Assembly: GCA_026936335.1 (NCBI GenBank)
Contig: JAPMXV010000017.1
Location: 124,001 to 188,000 of the forward strand
Direction: 5' to 3'
Origin: Mantamonas sphyraenae STR306
Taxonomy: Eukaryota > Protista > CRuMs
Length of the DNA stretch: 64,000 nucleotides
Of the stretch, positions 29,920 through 41,129 are shown piece by piece. The first letter of the stretch is position 1, and every line of letters starts with the position of its first letter. The notes under the pieces are model-generated. The model was not told the origin of the DNA and did no database searches. It saw only the letters and a program-made list of their open reading frames with translations. A program made the translations under genes and the position numbers.

Positions 29920-32460
29920 TCACAGTTTGGCCAACAACACGCCACTGTGGTTGTGAACGCCAACGACGCGGCCGTCTCCGCGTGTGCCCGCGCCAACCTG
30001 CAGCTCGTGGTTGCACTTGCGCCGGTCCTGCTCGGCACAGCCCATCTCGCGCAGCTTGGCCACATGCTCGTCAATCTTGCGATACTGCCAGTGCATGCGA
30101 CTGTACAGGAACTGGCGCAAGTCGTACCGGTTGTCATCCGGCGAGTACGTTTCCATGTGCAGCGCTGGCGTCAACGTCGTCGTCTTGTGCCGGTTGATGG
30201 CATACATGCGGAAGAAGAACTTGACCTTGTTGGCCACCTCTTCGGCTGGCAACGATGACCAGATGGACAGCAGGCGCAGATACATCTCGTAGGGGCCACA
30301 GCGGGAAATCTTGCGCAGGCGCCCGTAGAACGACAGCTCCTCGTAGCTCATGCCCATGTCCTCCTCGTCTGTCTGTGTGTAGTTGCTGGTGATGGGCTCC
30401 AGTTCGGCGGTGGGCGGAGCGCCTGCAATTTCACTCAGTGTCGAGTAGCCCAGACGCAAACTGGCCCAGTGCAGAAAGCGTTTGAGATCCGTCTTGGAAA
30501 TCGACCCGATCGGGTTCAGATCGCCCGACGAGCAGTCATACTTGGTCATGTAGCCACGCAACGACTCGTCCACATTGGCACTGCTCAGCACCAGCAGACC
30601 TCCACGTTCGCCACGCGACCATTGCACCAGCTGGGCAAAGTAGTACGCAATCACCATCCTGCTGCGTGCTTGGATGTTCTGCAAGGCCAGGTTCTCCACC
30701 TCACTTCCCCCGTGCACCTTGAACTTGGGTTTCAGGCCAAAGTTGTCCGTAAACAGCTTCTCCAGTGCACCCGTCACCTCGTCGATGGTAACCTCCTTGT
30801 GGAAGGCGCCGATTTCCTTCGCCAGACGCTCGGCACGACCACGCGTGTCGTCGGAACTGTTGGTGGTGCCCATGTAGCATGTGACCAACACACTGTTGGC
30901 CATCTCTTCGGGTGCAGACGGCACACGGCCAACCACTCGCTCCACATCCTTGATCACCTCCTCGTTGCCGGCCTCCACCTGCTGCACCACAAGCTGACAC
31001 ATGGAGCCGACAATGGCCGCCACAGAGGCGCTGTCTGCACCGCCGCTCAGGGGCACAAAGAAGCCCGAAAGGCCCGAGCGACGCAAGTAATCCCACAGCC
31101 AGCAGGCTGGGCTGAGGGCAATCTCTTCCTCCGGGGTGTGGTAAAACACCTCGATAGGCTTGGTGGCCACCATGGTCATGGAAGAGCTCATGGGACAACA
31201 GGCACGAAAGTCCACCACCACGCTGGGGATGCGTTCGGCAATGGATGCCTGATGGGAGCGTGAAATGACGGCGGCTCGGTAGGACACAATCTCGTCCAGG
31301 TCGACCACGGCGTCAATGACCTCGACATCGCGCATGGAAAACTGTGAGGCCTGAGCAAGCAGGACGTCGTTGCTGGCAATCATGGCACAGCCGTCGTAGT
31401 AGAGACGGTCGCCGTCGCAACCCTGCTGGTTGGCGTACATGTACAAGCCGCCGCACTTGCGCACAGCACTCAGGATGAGGTTGACACGCGTGTCCAGCTT
31501 GCGCAGCTGGTGATGCGACCCACTTCCGTTGAGGATGATTTCCACGCCGTTGTTGGCCAGTTGGATGTGTGGGGAGTCGGGCGTGAACAGTTCTTCACAC
31601 AACTCTGTTCCCAGGCTCGTGTCACTCAGCTGCAGGTACGCCTCTCCAAATGGCACCGTCGACTGCCCTGTCAGTTCGGCAATCGCCTGCGGCAGCTGGT
31701 GCTGCTCCACCGTCCGCCGGTTGGGCCACGCCGTGAAATAGCGCTGCTCGCGGTAGTTGCCGTCGGACGCCAAGAAGATCTTGGGCCGGATCAACAGGAT
31801 CTTGCCATTCAGGCAAAACACACGGCAGTTGTAGCGCACCTGTGGGACACGGGCACACGCGTGGTCACAAACCACACCCATGGCAATGTACGTGTGAGCG
31901 TTACTGCGACCCGACGCCGCAAACGCGTCCTGTCGTCAAGTCTTCCTCGCTTCTTCTTGCCCGGGGACTCGGGGGGCTGTCCGCCCCTTGCCCACCACAA
32001 TGGTCACACATCACCACCCCCCACACGTCCCACTTACCGATCTGTGGATGACAGGCATGCCAATATCGCACACGATGTCGTTTGTGACGTCGCTGGCCAG
32101 CAACGTCGCAAGACTCTCCCATGAGTGCCGAACTGTGTCTCCCTCCAGAAACGCGTCCTGACACCCGTATCCACACCTGCCACGCACATGCACACACACA
32201 TCCGCCACACATCCCACAGTCACGTGCGTTGTCCATCCGCCCTCCTGTGTTAGCCCTGCCTTCCCCGCACGCACGGACCTCGTGTGCAATTCCTGGTTCC
32301 GATCACTCAACCCAACTCACAGCTCCAGTTCCGGCCCCAGACGCACGGTGCACCCACGATCCTTGGCTACCTGGATGCTTTTCATCGTCCGTTCCAGGTT
32401 GCCTTCAAAGTCCAGGCTCCACTGGTTCAGGTTGCATGTGGCAGTTTTGATCAAGCGCAT
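29920..32460 (-). CDS. NADSYN1: Glutamine-dependent NAD+ synthetase
   Basis: Exons ~32460-32321, 32176-32038, 31839-29920. [65 protein letters not shown]. Confidence 0.95.
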
Positions 32461-32472
32461 CGCTCCTTTGTA

Positions 32473-32498
32473 TTGTGGCGTTCCGCGCGCTGTGGTCA
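32473..32498 (+). repeat. Candidate left imperfect TIR
   Basis: TTGTGGCGTTCCGCGCGCTGTGGTCA after TA; partial match to the reverse complement of 41092-41117. Confidence 0.45.
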
Positions 32499-32514
32499 GC
32501 AACGCAAAACAAAA

Positions 32515-33534
32515 ATGACCGTCAAAACGAATGCAACGGGTGGGTCATACATCCACGGCAAAGCCTTTTCGGCGGACAAACGAGAATGCATTCTCTTTCA
32601 CTACCAATCCAGCTTGCGTCCTTCGTGCAGAGGCACAGCGGAGGCTCTCGGTGTGTCTCCTTCCGTCGTGTCCAAGATTGTACGTCAACACCGAGCCATG
32701 GGCCATGTACGCCCTCTTGTGGCCCAACCACCGTTCAGGCGTCTCCTGGATGCCAATGACGACCAATTCATTGCTGAACAGGTGGCCGATGATCCGCGAC
32801 TGTACCTGGACGAGTTGCAAGTAGCCGTTGCTCTTCATCGCAACAAGGTGGTATCTCTGTCCACAATTCGCCGTTCTTGTGCGCGCATGGGACTGACTCG
32901 CAAGAAGGTGAGTGCTATCGCCAAGCAACGGTTCAGGGAATCCACCGTGGCGCGCACACGCGAGTTTACTCGAGCAATGAGGATTCGCGGTGTGTTCCGA
33001 GCGCCGAACGTGGTCTTCTTGGACGAAACTGCAGTGAACAACAGAGTGTGCTACAGGAGATATGGTCGTGCGAAACGTGGGCAACCAGCGGTCGTTGTGG
33101 AGAACCATCCCAAGCAAAAGCGCATCAGCGTGCTGGCGGCCATCAGCACCGGTGGGCGCTCGCCACTGGTAGCGTACACAATGCGAGAGGGGTCATACAA
33201 CCGGCAGCTGTTTATGGAGTTCCTGGAGCAAGACCTCTTGCCCCGCATGCGAGATTGCCGCCAAACAGTTCTGGTCATGGACAACTGCTCCATCCACAAA
33301 GGCGATGCTGTACGCCAGCTGTGCACCTGGTATGGGGTGGATGTCGAGTTTCTCCCGCCTTGCACACCTACGCTCAACCCCATCGAGCTCATGTTTAGCA
33401 AGTTCAAGGCGGTCCTCCGCAGGGAATTTCATCGAGTGGACATTTGCACTTTCGCGGCGATCTGTACTGCATTGGGGCATGTTACGGCTGCTGATGTGAG
33501 GAACTGGGTCCATCACTGCGGGTACCGCATGTAG
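32515..33534 (+). CDS. IS630/Tc1-mariner transposase, DD34E, 339 aa, paired-like DNA-binding domain
   Basis: [29 protein letters not shown] (34 residues between D2 and E); [16 protein letters not shown]; LYLDELQ...VSLSTIRR...GLTRKK linker. Confidence 0.95.
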
Positions 33535-34850: not shown

Positions 34851-37800
34851 ATGTCGATTCTGAAGTGTCAGCACCATAGCTGCAACAACGAGACAGTGCT
34901 CATGGTGTGCTGGGTAACGTCAGCCCCATCTCACGTGTCGCTGGTGTGTCCGACCTGTGTGGCCGACAACGAGTCGATTTCCCTGTACACACCACGAACA
35001 AGACTACCTGCAAATCTGGGCGAGCCCGAAGGTGACATGCAAGGGTACGCCAACGTCAACGGTGTCAACACCGCGAAGGTGGCATGCTGGGTGTCGTCCT
35101 ATTCAACTGCTGTGCGCGCCTCTCCACCTCTGCGAACGTCCATGTGCAAGTACCTTCTCGCATGGCTGGAGGCAACGACAGGCGGGAACGACCCGACCCA
35201 GTTGGGGCCTGAGCCTGGGGAGCAAGGTAAGCTCAAACCGCACTCAATCCCGCTGACCCGATTGCTCACCCGCCCCCTCTTCTTTGCGCCGGCACACACA
35301 GACCCCAGCGTCGTCAACACGGCCCTTCTGCGGCAGACCTGGTGCATGGCCATGTTCTGTGACGACGACATGTATGCCGTGGCCTGCAACGATCTCTTCC
35401 TTGCCGCTACAGCGCTCGCGGGGGGCGACGACCTGTGGGGTGACTCGGCAGATTTCCATCACCGCCTCGAGGTCGCATTCGACTCTGACTTCCCCATCCA
35501 GATGTTGCATGGTGGTACCCCCCCGCCAGCGGACGCCGCAGGGGTTGCAAAGCTTGCGGAGCGAGGAGCACTCCAGCAGCGTGTGGGCGAGGGCCTGCCG
35601 GAGCAAAACCAGCAAGTGCCCTTCGGGGTGCTCTGTTTCAAAGGGGCCCACTACACGGCATGGCTTCCACTGGCGGAAGGGAAATTCCGTGTGTACAATG
35701 ACCTTGCGCAGCAGCTGACTGACGAGGAGTGGCCCGCGCCTGAGCGTGCGCCCACGGGTTTCAGGCTGGTTTTCCTCAAGTCTCAACCGGAAAAGGAGTG
35801 GCGGTTGCCGTCTGCCATGGGCACCGTGGCTCTCGACAACAAATCAAACGTGTTCCGCAAGCCCATGGCCATCAAGGGCCCGCGAGTTGTGATGCAGAGC
35901 AAGGAGAGCTCCACCTCAGCTGCTGGGAGGCGTTTGTACGCGCATTCTGCACGGGCTCGTGGGACAACACCAGCGCCTCTGGGCAGGCCACCCTCGACTC
36001 GGGTGCAGGTTGCCGGGTCAACCGCATCTGTGCGTGGGCTCCGTTTCAACCGTGTGCCTGCCACGCAGACATCGGCAGCAGGGCAGCTGACACAGCTTCC
36101 GACTTCAAGCGGCGACAAGACGCCAGTGACCGCCAAGTATCTGGACGTGTTGAACGACAACTGGCAACCCCCACCTTTGGCTGACTCTGCTGTCAACGAG
36201 GGCGTGGAGGGTGGTGTGCAGCGTGGCGTCGCTGGGTCGGGGGGAACCCGCCTTGCCGCAGTGTACGTTGGCCTCAGCAGCCTCGCCGCTCGCTACTTGC
36301 ACCTCTCCGACCATACCATCACGCATCCCGCCACGTTCACCTCTGCCTGGCAATGGGTCACCACGATCCTCGACACTGTGTTGCCCAGATTGAGCAAGCT
36401 GTTTTCGACTCGCACGGTTGTGGTTGTGGACGACGTCGTGTCCACAGCCGCACTGTTTGCAGGTCGAGCCACGCCAGCCGAGCTGCAACGCTTCTACCAG
36501 CAACTGAGTGCAGCTGCGTCCCAGGACACCTTCTCCAACGCCAAGCAGCGAGCGTTCGCCGCTCGTGCCACTGTCACCACCCTGGCGCCAGTGATGCGCG
36601 ACTACCTTGCTGCCCATCAAGTGGCAACGATGTCACTGGACGAGTTCGTCACAAACCAGGCCGTCAGAAATAAGGCCGTCAGAAACCAGGCCGCCAAAAA
36701 CCAGGTCAAGGCCGAGGACGATGTCGTTCTGTGCCACCGCGAGGGGCGTCTCATGGCTGGCCTCGCACTCCATGGGTCAGCTCCGGGGCTGCGGGTTGTC
36801 AACATCTTCAACGCCCATGTGGTGGACACGAAGAAAGTGCACGCCAAAGCGACGTCATGGAAACTGATAACCTGGGCCAATGGAGTCAAGAAGAAGCCCA
36901 AAAAGGGGAAGACGACAAAGACCAAATCGCGAGGGAAAACATCGATCAAGAGTGACGACGAAAAGAAGGAAGAAGAGACTGAAGCGCTGAGGAAGCAGCT
37001 GCTCACGGTGGGTCTGGAGGAGACCGAACGTGACCATGGTCCCATGTCGGCCGTCGCCTTGGCGCAAGCAGTCTGCCAGCGACTTGGAGGAGTGCATGGT
37101 CTCGATCATCAACGCGCGCAGACCGTGATGGAGTCGTTCAGCAGACTGTGTACGCAGGCCAAGCCGAAACCGCGCTCAGTGGAGGAGTTGGCACAAGCAT
37201 TGGGCTTGACTGAGGTCAACATCACCTACAACCACAAGCCAGAGCTGAAGAACACCGATGACACCCGTATGCATATGGAGTACACGCTCGGGCGTGGCCA
37301 CAGTGCACGGGAAGGGACGCTGCACGTGCAGGAATTGCCATTCCATCTCGCACAGGGCATTCACAAGGATGTTGCGAAGGCCATGGTGGGCCAGGAGGAC
37401 GCCACGGAGCCGGACGAGGAGGACTGTGCGGTGCCCTACCTGCTGACGGCAACTGAAGCCGAAATCGCGCAGCTTGTGGAGGAGATTCCTGCTGGCTTTG
37501 ATGCATCTGTCTTCAAAAAGAACAAGGAGGAGTCACTCGGTTCCCGTGAGGCCGTTACAAGGTGGACATCTGTTCCACATGTGATCACAGCACGGCACGA
37601 GAAACAACTGGCAGTGCTCGTGCGGAAGGATGGCCAGGTGCTTCGCCCTCCTGCGACGCCATCATCAGCGACCCGTGCGGACCTATTCGAGGTGGCGCTC
37701 CAGACAGGGGCAACAACAGAGGGCGAGACATTGACGCCGCTCAAGGATGCTTTTTATGACAAGGATGACGTGAAGGGAAGCCAGCGGGGGCGACCCGTGT

Positions 37801-40800
37801 GGATTCCGCACGGTTTTGATTTCGCCACGCTGCTGCCTTCGGCCACGGCGATCAGGGAGCACGATTTTGTTGAGTACCAGAGCGATCTCAAGAAGAATCT
37901 GAAGCTGGAGGCGAACGTGCGTGGGCTGGGAAAGAGCGAGGCTGACGTTCTTGGAGCGTTGGCGGACTGTATGCTCGTGCAAACAGCCTTGCTTCGAGCA
38001 TGGTTCGTCGACCAGGTGATTCCAGAGGTGAAAAAGGACCCAACTGCATGGTTCACTGCGCCCCATGGACGCCAGCAATCGGTGGATGGCAGCGACGAGC
38101 AGGAGGAGGCGGAGCTGGATGAGGTGGAGCTGGATGAGGCGGAGCTGCCAACAGAGGATCAGACGATGATTGACGGGATGGTGGTCGACGGGATGGTGGA
38201 AGTTCACAGCCGCGTGAAGCCCTTCTACCTGCTCGAAGCGTCCACGGCTCTGCGCACAGTGGCGACGCACAACCTCAAGGTACTCAAGGAGAACGTGGAC
38301 ACCCCAGAGGAGCTCAAGTCTGTACGATTTACCAGGAACGGGATACAGAAGGCGGGCGATGGTCAACATGGTTTCGACTTTTCCTTCATGGTCACGCGTC
38401 TGAAGGTGGATCTTTCGGAGGCGCCCGTGTCGAGCATGGCCAATGACATCGCTCGTGCCTTCAATGGCAGCCTGCAGTCGGCCATCTCCTTGTGTGCCTA
38501 CCCGATGATCGTGGCGCTGATGAGGAACGGGGCGCCCAGCGAGCTGCCCATGTCCGCCATCGTGGCCAGCGTCGCCGCGCTCATGCGTACAAGCTATGCA
38601 AAGACCAAGAAGGCGTTCCAAACCCACCAGGTGTCGACAAAGGACACACGTGACTTTGTGTTCTCTCAGCCCATCCACAAGGCCACAAAGGCTGCTGCCG
38701 CGGCTGCTGCTCACTCTTCAGTGGAGGTCCAGGGGCCCTCCATGGATGTGCAGGAGTCCTCCATGGATGTGCTGCCCTCTGTGGATGTGGAGTCATCCAT
38801 GGATGTGCAGGAGTCCTCCGTGGATGTGCTGCCCTCTGTGGATGTGGAGTCATCCATGGATGTGCAGGAGTCCTCCGTGGATGTGCTGCCCTCTGTGGAT
38901 GTGGAGTCATCCATGGATGTGCAGGAGTCCTCCGTGGATGTGCTGCCCTCTGTGGATGTGGAGTCATCCATGGATGTGCAGGAGTCCTCCGTGGATGTGC
39001 TGCCCTCTGTGGATGCGCAGCGCTCACAAGGTGTATCTCCATGGGACCCGTACGAGGAAGTGTGCACAAGTCTCTCGGATCAACTCGGCAAGCACGTGCG
39101 TGGCAAACGGGACGCGTTGTCTGTGCTGTTGGATGTGATGCTCAAGCCCGACCTGAAGACCAATCTCAAAAGCACACAAGCAAAGCGCGCCATTGCATCG
39201 ACAGCAGCATCATTGGACTGTGTTGACGCGATGTTTCCCGGTCCGGTTGACATTGGCGGCCAGTTCGTCTTCGGCGCGTACTCCGTCAAGACGTACGCGT
39301 TTAAGATCTTTGTGAACACCATGGAAGCAAGGTGGAAAGCACATGGAACGCCGAACGGGAATGCCAACCCAGATGACCCCCCGGACGCCAACCCAGATGA
39401 CCCCCAAGACGCCAACCCGGACGCCAACCCGGACGCCAACCCGGACGCCAACCCGGACGCCAACCCAAACGACCCCCCAGACGCCAACCCGAACGCCAAG
39501 TCGGACGCCAACCCGGGTTGGTGGAATGCACTGAAAGAACGCGAGTGGGTTTTGACGGATGAGGCCATCCCGAGTCTCCCTAAATGGCTCAAGCAGGCAG
39601 TGTATCGGTGTCGGTATGCTCGTCGCATGCCAGAAAACAATGACGAGGATACTCAGCCAGTCCAACACTGGGCAGGAGAGCGGCCGCTGCAAACCGTGCC
39701 TCTGAAGTCAATACTCATGCTCACGCGCGGCGTTGGCACGAAAAACGCAAGGTGCCTGCTGAAGAACGTCAGCGCCAGCAGCATGCGCATGCTCTCTGGT
39801 GGAATCGCCGCTCAGGGGAAGTACAGGCGAGCCTTGGTGTTACAGCCACCAAGAGTTCACACTCTCCTGCCTTCACCGGCGAGCCTCGCAACATTGATCA
39901 GGCCAAGGATGGCTCATCTCCTGCCCCTTCTGCTGGACCCCAAGAAGAACGCGCTGATTGCCCTTGCCGTACTGAACCCAACGGGCATGCCAGACGCGCT
40001 GGTGGAAGCCGTCCAGCAGATCGCGCCTGGCTTTCCGGATTGCCCTGTTCCGAAGCGTGGCTTGGTCGAGCACGTCAAGGCCTTTGCCAAGAATGGATAC
40101 GCAGTCCTTGAGCATGCACGCAAGGTGCTGTGGATCAGCATTGACCCTGGTCGTGGACGCGACTGGGTCGAGGCGATCTTTGTGCGGGACGGCCAGCTGT
40201 ATGTGGCCACCTTGCCCCTGGACAGCCACGATGTGCAGGCACACAAGGCAGGGCAGGACCGAGTGCTGGCGTCGTACACGGACTTCAAGGAGGAGTACAA
40301 GCAACGTGTCTTCGGAAAAGATTTGCACAAGGATGCGAAGCACATGCGTGCGCAGTACGCAACGTTTCGCAAACGAAGGATGGCAGGCGTGCGTGAGATG
40401 ATCTCCGTGATCCACAAGTTCCGCGCACATCTGGGCCTGGAGCAGGTGATTGTGCTGCAGCCGACAAAGACGTTTGGCGGACGCGGGAAATCGCAGGAGA
40501 TGCGGGAGATGCTGGCCAACCACTTTGTGGTCATTGCAGCAGACGAGAGGTATACATCGCAGCAGTGCTTCTGTGGCAGCGCTGTCGACAACTTGGACGA
40601 CTTTGGCGCTGAGAAGTTTGGGCGATGGCGGACGTGCAGCAGCCACTGCCTGTCGGACATCGACTCCAACATGTTTGACGCCACCAAGCAGCTCAAACGC
40701 TTTGCACAACGGCACGCATGCAAAGAGATGGAGGGCGAGGGTGAGCACAACTTGCACCAGGCAGTTCAGAGAGACCGAGGCTCTGCACACTGCATCTTCT

Positions 40801-41012
40801 GGCGGCAGATGCTCTTCTTTGTCACAGGCGTCTGGATGGAGAAGCCAACAAAGAAAATCAAGGTGCAACGCAAGGCAGCAGACAAGGCAGGCGAGAGAAG
40901 CAAGAAGAGAAGAGATGAGGAAGTGGGGGAAGAAGAGGATTCGGGTGGGTCACAACCACAACAGCATGCTCCCAAGCGACAAAGGGTACAGCGACCAAGG
41001 ATAGGCAAATGA
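34851..41012 (+). CDS. Giant Fanzor (TnpB-like RNA-guided RuvC nuclease), 2053 aa, with N-terminal USP-like cysteine-protease domain
   Basis: RuvC-I WISIDPG (D1765); RuvC-II strand VIVLQP lacking E; alternative catalytic DERYTSQQCFC (E1899); zinc finger CFC...CSSHC; RuvC-III QRDRGSAHCI (D1975); basic NLS-like tail. Lies beside a Tc1/mariner transposase. Confidence 0.85.
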   Translation: MSILKCQHHSCNNETVLMVCWVTSAPSHVSLVCPTCVADNESISLYTPRTRLPANLGEPEGDMQGYANVNGVNTAKVACWVSSYSTAVRASPPLRTSMCKYLLAWLEATTGGNDPTQLGPEPGEQGKLKPHSIPLTRLLTRPLFFAPAHTDPSVVNTALLRQTWCMAMFCDDDMYAVACNDLFLAATALAGGDDLWGDSADFHHRLEVAFDSDFPIQMLHGGTPPPADAAGVAKLAERGALQQRVGEGLPEQNQQVPFGVLCFKGAHYTAWLPLAEGKFRVYNDLAQQLTDEEWPAPERAPTGFRLVFLKSQPEKEWRLPSAMGTVALDNKSNVFRKPMAIKGPRVVMQSKESSTSAAGRRLYAHSARARGTTPAPLGRPPSTRVQVAGSTASVRGLRFNRVPATQTSAAGQLTQLPTSSGDKTPVTAKYLDVLNDNWQPPPLADSAVNEGVEGGVQRGVAGSGGTRLAAVYVGLSSLAARYLHLSDHTITHPATFTSAWQWVTTILDTVLPRLSKLFSTRTVVVVDDVVSTAALFAGRATPAELQRFYQQLSAAASQDTFSNAKQRAFAARATVTTLAPVMRDYLAAHQVATMSLDEFVTNQAVRNKAVRNQAAKNQVKAEDDVVLCHREGRLMAGLALHGSAPGLRVVNIFNAHVVDTKKVHAKATSWKLITWANGVKKKPKKGKTTKTKSRGKTSIKSDDEKKEEETEALRKQLLTVGLEETERDHGPMSAVALAQAVCQRLGGVHGLDHQRAQTVMESFSRLCTQAKPKPRSVEELAQALGLTEVNITYNHKPELKNTDDTRMHMEYTLGRGHSAREGTLHVQELPFHLAQGIHKDVAKAMVGQEDATEPDEEDCAVPYLLTATEAEIAQLVEEIPAGFDASVFKKNKEESLGSREAVTRWTSVPHVITARHEKQLAVLVRKDGQVLRPPATPSSATRADLFEVALQTGATTEGETLTPLKDAFYDKDDVKGSQRGRPVWIPHGFDFATLLPSATAIREHDFVEYQSDLKKNLKLEANVRGLGKSEADVLGALADCMLVQTALLRAWFVDQVIPEVKKDPTAWFTAPHGRQQSVDGSDEQEEAELDEVELDEAELPTEDQTMIDGMVVDGMVEVHSRVKPFYLLEASTALRTVATHNLKVLKENVDTPEELKSVRFTRNGIQKAGDGQHGFDFSFMVTRLKVDLSEAPVSSMANDIARAFNGSLQSAISLCAYPMIVALMRNGAPSELPMSAIVASVAALMRTSYAKTKKAFQTHQVSTKDTRDFVFSQPIHKATKAAAAAAAHSSVEVQGPSMDVQESSMDVLPSVDVESSMDVQESSVDVLPSVDVESSMDVQESSVDVLPSVDVESSMDVQESSVDVLPSVDVESSMDVQESSVDVLPSVDAQRSQGVSPWDPYEEVCTSLSDQLGKHVRGKRDALSVLLDVMLKPDLKTNLKSTQAKRAIASTAASLDCVDAMFPGPVDIGGQFVFGAYSVKTYAFKIFVNTMEARWKAHGTPNGNANPDDPPDANPDDPQDANPDANPDANPDANPDANPNDPPDANPNAKSDANPGWWNALKEREWVLTDEAIPSLPKWLKQAVYRCRYARRMPENNDEDTQPVQHWAGERPLQTVPLKSILMLTRGVGTKNARCLLKNVSASSMRMLSGGIAAQGKYRRALVLQPPRVHTLLPSPASLATLIRPRMAHLLPLLLDPKKNALIALAVLNPTGMPDALVEAVQQIAPGFPDCPVPKRGLVEHVKAFAKNGYAVLEHARKVLWISIDPGRGRDWVEAIFVRDGQLYVATLPLDSHDVQAHKAGQDRVLASYTDFKEEYKQRVFGKDLHKDAKHMRAQYATFRKRRMAGVREMISVIHKFRAHLGLEQVIVLQPTKTFGGRGKSQEMREMLANHFVVIAADERYTSQQCFCGSAVDNLDDFGAEKFGRWRTCSSHCLSDIDSNMFDATKQLKRFAQRHACKEMEGEGEHNLHQAVQRDRGSAHCIFWRQMLFFVTGVWMEKPTKKIKVQRKAADKAGERSKKRRDEEVGEEEDSGGSQPQQHAPKRQRVQRPRIGK
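38739..39014 (+). repeat. 57-bp in-frame tandem repeat (~4.8 copies; SMDVQESSVDVLPSVDVES)
   Basis: Near-identical units with period 57 (e.g. 38794 and 38851), each built from 21+18+18-bp subrepeats. Confidence 0.95.
39360..39516 (+). repeat. 12-bp-based in-frame repeat encoding DANP/DDPP
   Basis: GACGCCAACCCG repeated; protein NANPDDPPDANPDDPQDANPDANPDANP... Confidence 0.95.
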
Positions 41013-41117
41013 TCGGCCTACAGATCCAAATCCACAGGCTTACCCATACTACCTTGTCGCACCATGTGGTGCATCGACTAGCCGAAGGCCATGTGCACAG
41101 CCATGTGGCCAATACAA
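41013..41117 (+). ncRNA. Candidate Fanzor omegaRNA scaffold
   Basis: Lies between the Fanzor stop and the inferred right end. Stems 41013-41020/41079-41085, 41059-41064/41067-41072 (extended by GTC/GAC) and 41087-41095/41102-41110. Confidence 0.55.
41092..41117 (-). repeat. Candidate right imperfect TIR
   Basis: Reverse complement TTGTATTGGCCACATGGCTGTGCACA; followed by TA at 41118-41119. Confidence 0.45.
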
Positions 41118-41129
41118 TATTGCTTCCAC

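Follow-up and report, generated by a model that had tools for sequence, protein, structure and literature searches.

Fanzor and TnpB proteins are known as small nucleases that cut DNA under the guidance of an RNA, and what they do for eukaryotic transposons is not settled. Canonical ubiquitin-specific proteases (USPs), in turn, hold ubiquitin by means of a fingers subdomain, usually with a CxxC...CxxC zinc ribbon. Fanzor1c has been found associated with the Tc1/mariner transposase (Jiang et al. 2023, PMC10530073), and at the N-terminus this survey of Fanzor proteins describes only disorder and a nuclear localisation signal, without mention of a protease domain. Here, we present a locus of the protist Mantamonas sphyraenae STR306 in which features of both kinds of protein meet. 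The stretch analysed, referred to as the window, comprises 64,000 nt (JAPMXV010000017.1:124,001-188,000, assembly GCA_026936335.1), and was compared with a genome of 25 Mb in 78 contigs, with about 60% G+C. Gene comparison shows three divergent families of giant genes, which we call A (the family of the window), B and C, each of which joins in one frame a conserved USP-like domain of the Cys/His/Asn type to a TnpB-like nuclease.

In the reading that we prefer, to which we would assign as a whole a probability of about 0.6, the window from 32.3 to 41.1 kb would be a Tc1/mariner-type transposon with two genes, one for a DDE transposase and the other for a giant protein. This protein would be composed of a four-Cys zinc ribbon, a compact and divergent USP-type (clan CA, C19-like) cysteine peptidase domain without fingers, and a C-terminal TnpB/Fanzor-like RuvC nuclease.

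A first-pass annotation of the window had read at this place a Fanzor fused to a zinc ribbon and to an isopeptidase domain with an intact Cys-His-Asn/Asp set, and all the strings it quoted occur, at the residues it named, in the translation of positions 34851-35840 (+). The motifs are conserved in about 11 copies of the gene from four lineages of family A. Eight residues, C6, C11, C33, C36, N73, C79 (the proposed nucleophile), H267 and D284, are invariant across these lineages, which are 46-60% identical, and at position 283 there is either N or D, as there is in genuine USPs. The His box follows the USP pattern GHY...W..[FY][ND]D, with both the His and the Asn/Asp, and the distance from the His to N/D (16-17 residues), as well as the roughly 20 residues from there to the final strand, is that of the host USP domains. 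Over some 290 codons, the ratio of nonsynonymous to synonymous substitution rates (dN/dS) between subfamilies is 0.19-0.24, at a dS of 1.4-2.1, where synonymous sites are saturated. Among recent copies the ratio is about 0.5, in keeping with the decay that transposon copies undergo once inserted. Purifying selection and conserved motifs, taken together, argue for a working domain and mildly favour catalysis. The four-cysteine module in front has no match in Pfam, and its secondary structure was predicted by AlphaFold2 (AF2), with low confidence, as two beta-hairpins.

The relation to USPs becomes apparent through the sister families. A scan of the genome with the Pfam UCH model (PF00443) returned 30-odd host USP genes and, in addition, a weak His-box match in an open reading frame (ORF) of 1637 aa, which belongs to family B (L056 and the 63% identical L057). 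Family B shares with the window protein the C-terminal motifs VVIAADERYTSQQC.CG / VVKDLDEYNTS..RCG and QRD..S...FW (BLASTP 4e-5) and encodes near its N-terminus, across introns, NVEGVLCYMTVAVRVL, the zinc ribbon CPGC ... CSKC and SGHYTALVRQHTGEWIQFNDEAV. The UCH model matches its His box with E-values of 5e-4 and 1.8e-3, at 18-20 bits, below the cut-off of 23.9. In family C (L058-L060 and L065; three copies of 1610-1685 aa), whose C-terminus is of the family B type, the equivalents are NPMALLCHATVAVRAL, FCSC ... CSSGRC and AGHYVLVLRVDDTHWRVFDDDRV. The three families have in common the Asn at -6, an aromatic residue or His after the Cys, and T.AVR (N(-6)...C-[YH]...T.AVR in B and C), and the USP-like domain of B and C occupies the same N-terminal place as the family A domain, in proteins with a homologous C-terminus.

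These likenesses were quantified by means of hhalign, comparing exon-wise alignments with a profile of 19 USP domains from the genome's own host genes. The second exon of families B and C matches this USP profile with a probability of 96.8 and an E-value of 2.2e-10 over 112 columns covering the fingers and the His box (reversed control, E 0.26), and the second exon of family A matches that of B and C at the His box with an E-value of 6.5e-4 (reversed control, 0.52). Compared directly with the USP profile, the second exon of family A is placed on USP columns 292-317, with H267 and N283 on the His box (E 0.02), and its score is reached by none of 150 column shuffles. The first exon is placed on columns 2-31, where GVNTAKVACWVSSYSTAVRASPPLR falls on the Cys box GLxNxGNTC[FY]MNS......P.[FL]R and C79 on the nucleophile (E 0.07; the score is reached by 16 of 150 shuffles). 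The two matches are collinear. A second-exon profile built from A, B and C retrieves true host USP genes with E-values of 4.5e-5 to 3.6e-3; a search of the genome with a profile of family A only did not reach the host USPs. The assignment of the family A domain to the USPs is thus transitive, via sister families in the same genome, and what lies at the N-terminus is most likely a peptidase domain of papain fold, derived from a USP, in which the Cys, the His and the Asn/Asp have been kept.

Several results weigh against this reading. Neither residues 1-330 of the window protein nor either exon had a match in Pfam or NCBIfam, even at E 10 (the family A domain does not reach the 23.9-bit gathering threshold of UCH), PDB sequence searches with the protein and the family profiles gave nothing relevant, and phmmer with residues 1-330 found 0 matches among 1.84 billion representative proteins. 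The public protein sets that were searched do not contain these families, which left no basis for an alignment with outside sequences, and the AF2 model of residues 1-330 from the shallow family alignment has a mean confidence (pLDDT) of 38 and is unusable, so that the model does not establish the juxtaposition of C79 and H267. MAFFT alignments that mixed exon fragments of A, B and C with the read-through sequence misplaced the fragments and were excluded from folding. As for the Cys box, its match is not significant alone and only its placement is telling, and the first exon of family A does not match that of B and C significantly (E 0.3). Family A, furthermore, lacks the fingers subdomain between the thumb and the His box, where it has a short acidic, helical stretch instead, and its oxyanion Asn lies at -6 and not at the usual -5. 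Weak support for the USP reading came from an ESMFold2 co-fold of residues 1-330 with the genome's own ubiquitin (L062:1495-1722), which scored 0.49, against 0.01 for the best of three controls; this pass of the weak class may reflect memory of USP-ubiquitin complexes and therefore shows likeness, not binding. Agreement between the runs extends to 92% of contacts or more, and the partner has a pLDDT of at least 83. Of 78 solved complexes, 51 reach the mark, as do 2 of 108 mismatched pairs, and the range up to 0.60 contains only 5 of those 78 complexes and all 4 mismatches that passed.

The structural check proposed in the first-pass annotation, AlphaFold followed by Foldseek, led to leads only. 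On the model with pLDDT 38 there was no match at E <= 0.001, and the first six rows were TssM, a USP-like deubiquitinase (DUB), with E-values of about 0.1 and template-modelling (TM) scores of about 0.2. Lower rows contain other papain-like DUBs, such as ZUFSP, the foot-and-mouth disease virus leader protease and, at rank 22, USPL1. Likewise, those language-model neighbours that have a family assigned are clusters of UCH, CYLD, C28, C70 and C98, all with scores below 0.9. None of the direct searches, whether by sequence or by fold, put a name to the domain.

Family B has the fingers, with a CxxC...CxxC ribbon (CPGC...CSKC), and family C has them in a looser form, as a beta-rich Cys cluster (FCSC...CSSGRC). 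With the fingers lost, a ribbon in front instead and a Cys to His distance of just 163 residues after splicing, the family A domain is therefore a minimal USP-like domain.

The reading of one uninterrupted frame between the two boxes, on which the first-pass annotation had relied, did not survive the comparison of copies, since it overlooks an intron. The 2053-codon frame of the window is continuous because a 75-nt intron happens to be in frame and free of stops in this copy. In ten other copies the same interval measures 74, 77, 77, 79, 79, 79, 92, 94, 96 and 102 nt, and among close copies every length change falls within it. Most other copies encode the initial 140 residues in one frame and the remainder in another, and reading through leads to a frameshift or to stops. 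Removal of the GT...AG interval restores the frame in 9 of the 10 other copies, the exception being copy C57, which has a separate 1-nt insertion. The interval has the signals GTAAGC, branch-like CTGAC/CTCAC, a pyrimidine run CCCCCTCTTCTTT and CACAG, between the flanks GAGCAAG and ACCCCAGC, and at this very position, likewise in phase 1, GTAAC or GTAAGT ... CTGAC ... CAG is present in the divergent paralogues (46-60% protein identity). Thus, ORF residues 126-150 (25 aa) are probably not part of the protein, the spliced junction would most likely read ...EPGEQ-D-PSVVN..., and H267 would become H242. The exons were searched separately; single-chain work used the read-through frame of the window, which includes the 25 intron-coded residues. 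More generally, gene models of these elements cannot be taken straight from open frames. In families B and C (L056:5523-6501 (-), L057 and L058) one intron precedes the catalytic Cys by only about six codons and a second follows ...QQSSTE, at positions and in phases that differ from those of the single intron of family A.

At the other end of the protein, both the Fanzor-like nature of the nuclease and its fusion in a single gene, as read in the first-pass annotation, were borne out. The RuvC D-E-D triad with an inserted zinc finger (SIDPG, ADERYTS, CxC...CxxxC, QRD) is present in the window protein, where the Pfam model Cas12f1-like_TNB (TNB) matches residues 1893-1933 with an E-value of 0.0076, below the cut-off. 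At least 39 matches of TNB occur in the genome, mostly in open frames of 1500-2000 aa of several divergent families, a very large load for 25 Mb. Four of the matches are in Fanzor-like ORFs of ordinary size (633-849 aa) with the motifs ADPGG ... ADEAWTTRTCSACG ... CGKCG ... RD. A chain of BLASTP matches leads from the window protein to family B (1e-5), from there to a giant ORF with TNB above the cut-off (1.7e-5), and from this one to the small Fanzor-like ORFs (0.005), to which the window family is also linked directly by hhalign (E 0.0014). Word-indexed searches with the C-terminus of the window protein, once within the entire protein and once by itself, gave 0 matches, and so did one with the C-terminus of family B.

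The AF2 model of the C-terminal 310 aa (1690-1999), a poor one with a pLDDT of 41, shows from WISIDPG onwards the RuvC order beta1-3/helix/beta4/helix/beta5. Foldseek with this model returned AsCas12f (E 4.2e-4, probability 1.00), Cas12g, Cas12j and a phage RuvC; SpuFz Fanzor comes further down (E 0.07). Type V nucleases or RuvC make up most of the top 16 rows. Altogether, homology of the C-terminus to TnpB-type proteins is shown by these gene and profile comparisons. Two stretches are candidates for the RuvC-I motif (window 39975 and 40143). LAVLNPTG aligns with ADPGG of the small Fanzor-like ORFs, with an Asn (N1709) for the Asp, and SIDPGRGRD, 56 residues after it, has its counterpart in VDWGVTRD of family B and lies at the beginning of the predicted beta1 strand. 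The RuvC-I Asp may accordingly be either D1765 or at the N1709 position.

The gene resides in a transposon. The transposase gene lies 1.3 kb upstream of the giant ORF of the window, and transposases 98-100% identical to it precede family A giant ORFs at nine places in total, this one and eight others, with one of them split (C41). Short transposase fragments are found at family A copies C52 and C71, and transposases 45-48% identical adjoin family C and other giant ORFs (46% for the family C neighbour). The giant gene itself has about ten further copies in the genome. Over the final 1.6 kb of their ORFs these copies are 92-99% identical, and the elements are mosaic. Across all subfamilies this final part and the 3' end (window 39433-41119) are 92-98% identical, but the first 4.5 kb only 63-72% (L025, L026, L027 and L028). 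Copy C57 changes parent near position 35892, right behind the USP-like domain, combining a USP-like domain of the C68 type with a remainder of the window type. Modules have therefore been exchanged between elements. The coordinates of the features are collected below.

Table 1. Features of the transposon in the window, with residues numbered as in the read-through frame.
Feature	Position (nt of the window)	Strand	Basis
Tc1/mariner (IS630-like) DDE_3 transposase gene, first gene of the element	32284-33534	+	Pfam DDE_3 E 2e-25; helix-turn-helix/paired-like N-terminus
Giant ORF: zinc ribbon, USP-like domain, about 1300 aa unassigned, TnpB/Fanzor-like nuclease	34851-41012	+	2053 codons read through, about 2028 aa spliced
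Four-cysteine module C6-x4-C11 ... C33-x2-C36, putative zinc ribbon	34866-34958	+	four Cys invariant in four lineages; zinc binding predicted
Cys box GYANVNGVNTAKVACWVSS (G65-S83), proposed nucleophile C79, N73 at -6	35043-35099	+	VNGVN and ACWVS invariant
Intron of 75 nt, phase 1, in frame and without stop in the window copy only	35227-35301	+	comparison of copies
USP-like domain, second exon part: helical region, then beta region	35302-35785	+	His-box hhalign matches, conservation
His box GVLCFKGAHYTAWLPLAEGKFRVYNDL (G259-L285; H267, N283, D284)	35625-35705	+	H267 and D284 invariant
Final strand FRLVFLK (residues 304-310)	35760-35780	+	translation
TnpB/Fanzor-like RuvC and zinc-finger module: D1765 (SIDPG), E1899 (ADERYTS), C1906/C1908/C1929/C1933, D1975 (QRD) or D1936	39918-40847	+	Pfam, BLASTP chain, hhalign, Foldseek

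The giant ORF also has repeats. Its final 142 bp or so (window 40860-41001) are present in one or two additional tandem copies in C52, C68, C71, C40 and C15, and its interior contains a 57-bp minisatellite made up of SSMDVQESSVDVLPSVDVE units as well as a PDANPDAN repeat (window 38739-39014 and 39340-39530), the latter giving rise to spurious PDB matches to the NANP repeats of the Plasmodium circumsporozoite protein. Regarding ubiquitin itself, polyubiquitin arrays are numerous in the genome, several of them clustered on the same contigs (C78, C33, C40 and C9), and this ubiquitin reads NISKEST. The usual form is NIQKEST. An internal ubiquitin that the protease could cut was sought in the giant ORFs and the idea was rejected, the lone long ubiquitin-bearing ORF being an alpha-2-macroglobulin-like gene and not a Fanzor. 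This ORF of 1964 aa (L064:2074-7965 (-), the same as G000:C29:651573-657464; domains bMG10, MG2, A2M and bMG5) has an unusual architecture, with a near-canonical ubiquitin domain (PF00240 E 2e-25, residues 1121-1192) inserted just before the A2M domain.

What the USP-like domain may do can be proposed as follows. It would fold as the palm and thumb of a USP, with the Cys box (C79), a helical thumb and the His box (H267), and it would bind ubiquitin or a ubiquitin-like modifier (Ubl) and cleave isopeptide bonds. We favour that the domain would act beside the nuclease and deubiquitinate the element's own proteins, which would thus escape degradation. Alternatively, ubiquitin might be removed from chromatin or repair factors at the site bound by the nuclease. 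The possible activities put forward in the first-pass annotation were the stripping of marks at the target, counteraction of SUMO silencing and self-processing. A more ambitious proposal, tentative and with the odds somewhat against it, is that of an RNA-guided nuclease with a built-in active deubiquitinase, whose guide RNA would direct a ubiquitin/Ubl eraser to a DNA site of choice. At least three divergent families would have kept this combination, which elements would exchange as a cassette. If this were true, ubiquitin might be stripped from histones, PCNA or repair factors, steering the repair of the break towards copying of the element, or the nuclease and the transposase may be spared degradation. 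The protein would then be a programmable DUB of natural origin and would add a new accessory activity to the TnpB/Cas12 lineage.

The domain might, on another reading, be USP-derived and have lost its enzyme activity, serving as a ubiquitin/Ubl-binding or structural module, for instance recruiting the nuclease to ubiquitinated chromatin, with Cys, His and Asn kept for binding or by descent. The loss of the fingers and a sequence too divergent for any USP model would agree with this, and the co-fold with ubiquitin bears at most on binding, not on catalysis. However, pseudo-enzymes usually lose at least one catalytic position, and here the three catalytic positions and N73 are invariant across lineages with saturated synonymous sites, and also in B and C. 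Active USP-like DUBs without fingers do exist, besides, as is the case of TssM, which lacks this subdomain and whose PDB entries bear titles that speak of a DUB reacted with Ub-PA. We regard a non-enzymatic domain as unlikely.

The giant size of the protein, with around 1300 residues without an assigned domain, raises the question of a protease that would cut in cis the 2000-aa polyprotein to which it belongs, in the manner of viral papain-like proteases, freeing a nuclease of normal size. The protein does contain LxGG motifs, among them MLSGG at 1647-1651, about 400 aa from the C-terminus, where a cut would leave a TnpB-sized fragment. Against such self-processing, which we consider to have little chance, the LSGG is not at the aligned place in family B or in L035, and USPs require a folded ubiquitin-like body in their substrate, whereas none was detected in the protein by Pfam.

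An equally poor chance is given to the absence of any relation with USPs, that is, to a separate fold whose Cys and His motifs resemble the USP boxes by chance or convergence. Such an origin would account for the lack of a direct database match, the failure of AF2, a Cys-box alignment within the range of the shuffles and Foldseek E-values of about 0.1. It would not easily account for the collinear match of two separate exons to opposite ends of the USP profile, for a His box that scores above all 150 shuffles, for USP-like spacing from the His to N/D and to the final strand, for the position of the domain where B and C have a significant USP-like domain, or for the retrieval of host USPs by the joint profile of the three families.

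Very improbable, finally, is a USPL1-type SUMO isopeptidase (C98) and not a ubiquitin protease, the preference of the first-pass annotation, which could not be upheld: the CW at the nucleophile is as in USPL1, which we take to have a Trp at this place, USPL1 is in the Foldseek list and one language-model cluster has 10% of C98 members, but the C98 model (PF15499) matches neither the protein nor anything in the genome (control genomes being silent too), the USPL1 rows of Foldseek (ranks 22, 27 and 32) have E-values from 1.2 (rank 22) to 1.9 over 60-106 columns, and the sister families have CY or CH with canonical USP His boxes and match PF00443, the ubiquitin co-fold having passed weakly.

Returning to the preferred reading, a USP-derived peptidase domain joined to a TnpB/Fanzor-like nuclease, its interest lies in a nuclease that is a module of a 2000-aa protein keeping a protease-type domain under selection, and in the occurrence of this arrangement in three divergent families of one genome, next to Tc1/mariner transposases. 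Should the domain be active, RNA-guided DNA targeting would be linked to the ubiquitin system, which would provide a hint on host degradation or on repair choice at the cut, and a natural design for targeted deubiquitination. Should it be inactive, the protein would still represent domain accretion in the TnpB lineage and a fingerless, minimal USP.

Among the known systems, the USPs (MEROPS C19, PF00443) share with the family A domain the order and the spacing of Cys box, His box, Asn/Asp and final hydrophobic strand, as well as a nucleophile followed by an aromatic residue and a GxHYTA...G.[FW]..[YF][ND]D His box. In contrast to them, family A has no Pfam match and neither fingers nor an internal zinc ribbon, carrying a separate zinc ribbon in front and having its domain within a transposon nuclease. 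TssM from Burkholderia pseudomallei (PDB 8pz3, 8q00, 8ssi) is likewise a compact USP-like enzyme, and gave the best Foldseek rows for the window model; it is, however, a secreted bacterial effector with no nuclease fusion, and the likeness (E ~0.1, TM ~0.2, pLDDT 38) is a lead only. USPL1 (C98; PDB 7p99, 7zju) has the USP fold with a divergent sequence, and its likeness is limited to weak, short structural rows with no match of the C98 model. Other DNA transposons also carry ubiquitin- or Ubl-type protease domains, but of different peptidase families, namely Ulp1/C48, with the catalytic order His-Asp-Cys, in Mutator-like elements, and OTU in Helitrons, and we know of none of these that is fused to an RNA-guided nuclease.

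Fanzor1 and TnpB are also among the systems closest to this gene. Full-text searches of the published literature for Fanzor with ubiquitin, deubiquitin- or protease and fusion turned up no description of a fusion of this kind, in agreement with the first-pass annotation, which knew of none. Fanzor1 and TnpB have in common with the window protein the C-terminal RuvC module D...E...zinc finger...D, the Tc1/mariner neighbour and the multicopy state. They differ from it in size (400-900 aa against 2000 aa) and in that the window protein, too divergent for Pfam thresholds or database matches, has a protease-like domain at its N-terminus. The present analysis contributes the fingerless nature of the USP-like domain of family A, the intron, the statistical link to USPs via families B and C, the selection acting on the domain and the mosaic structure of the elements that carry it.

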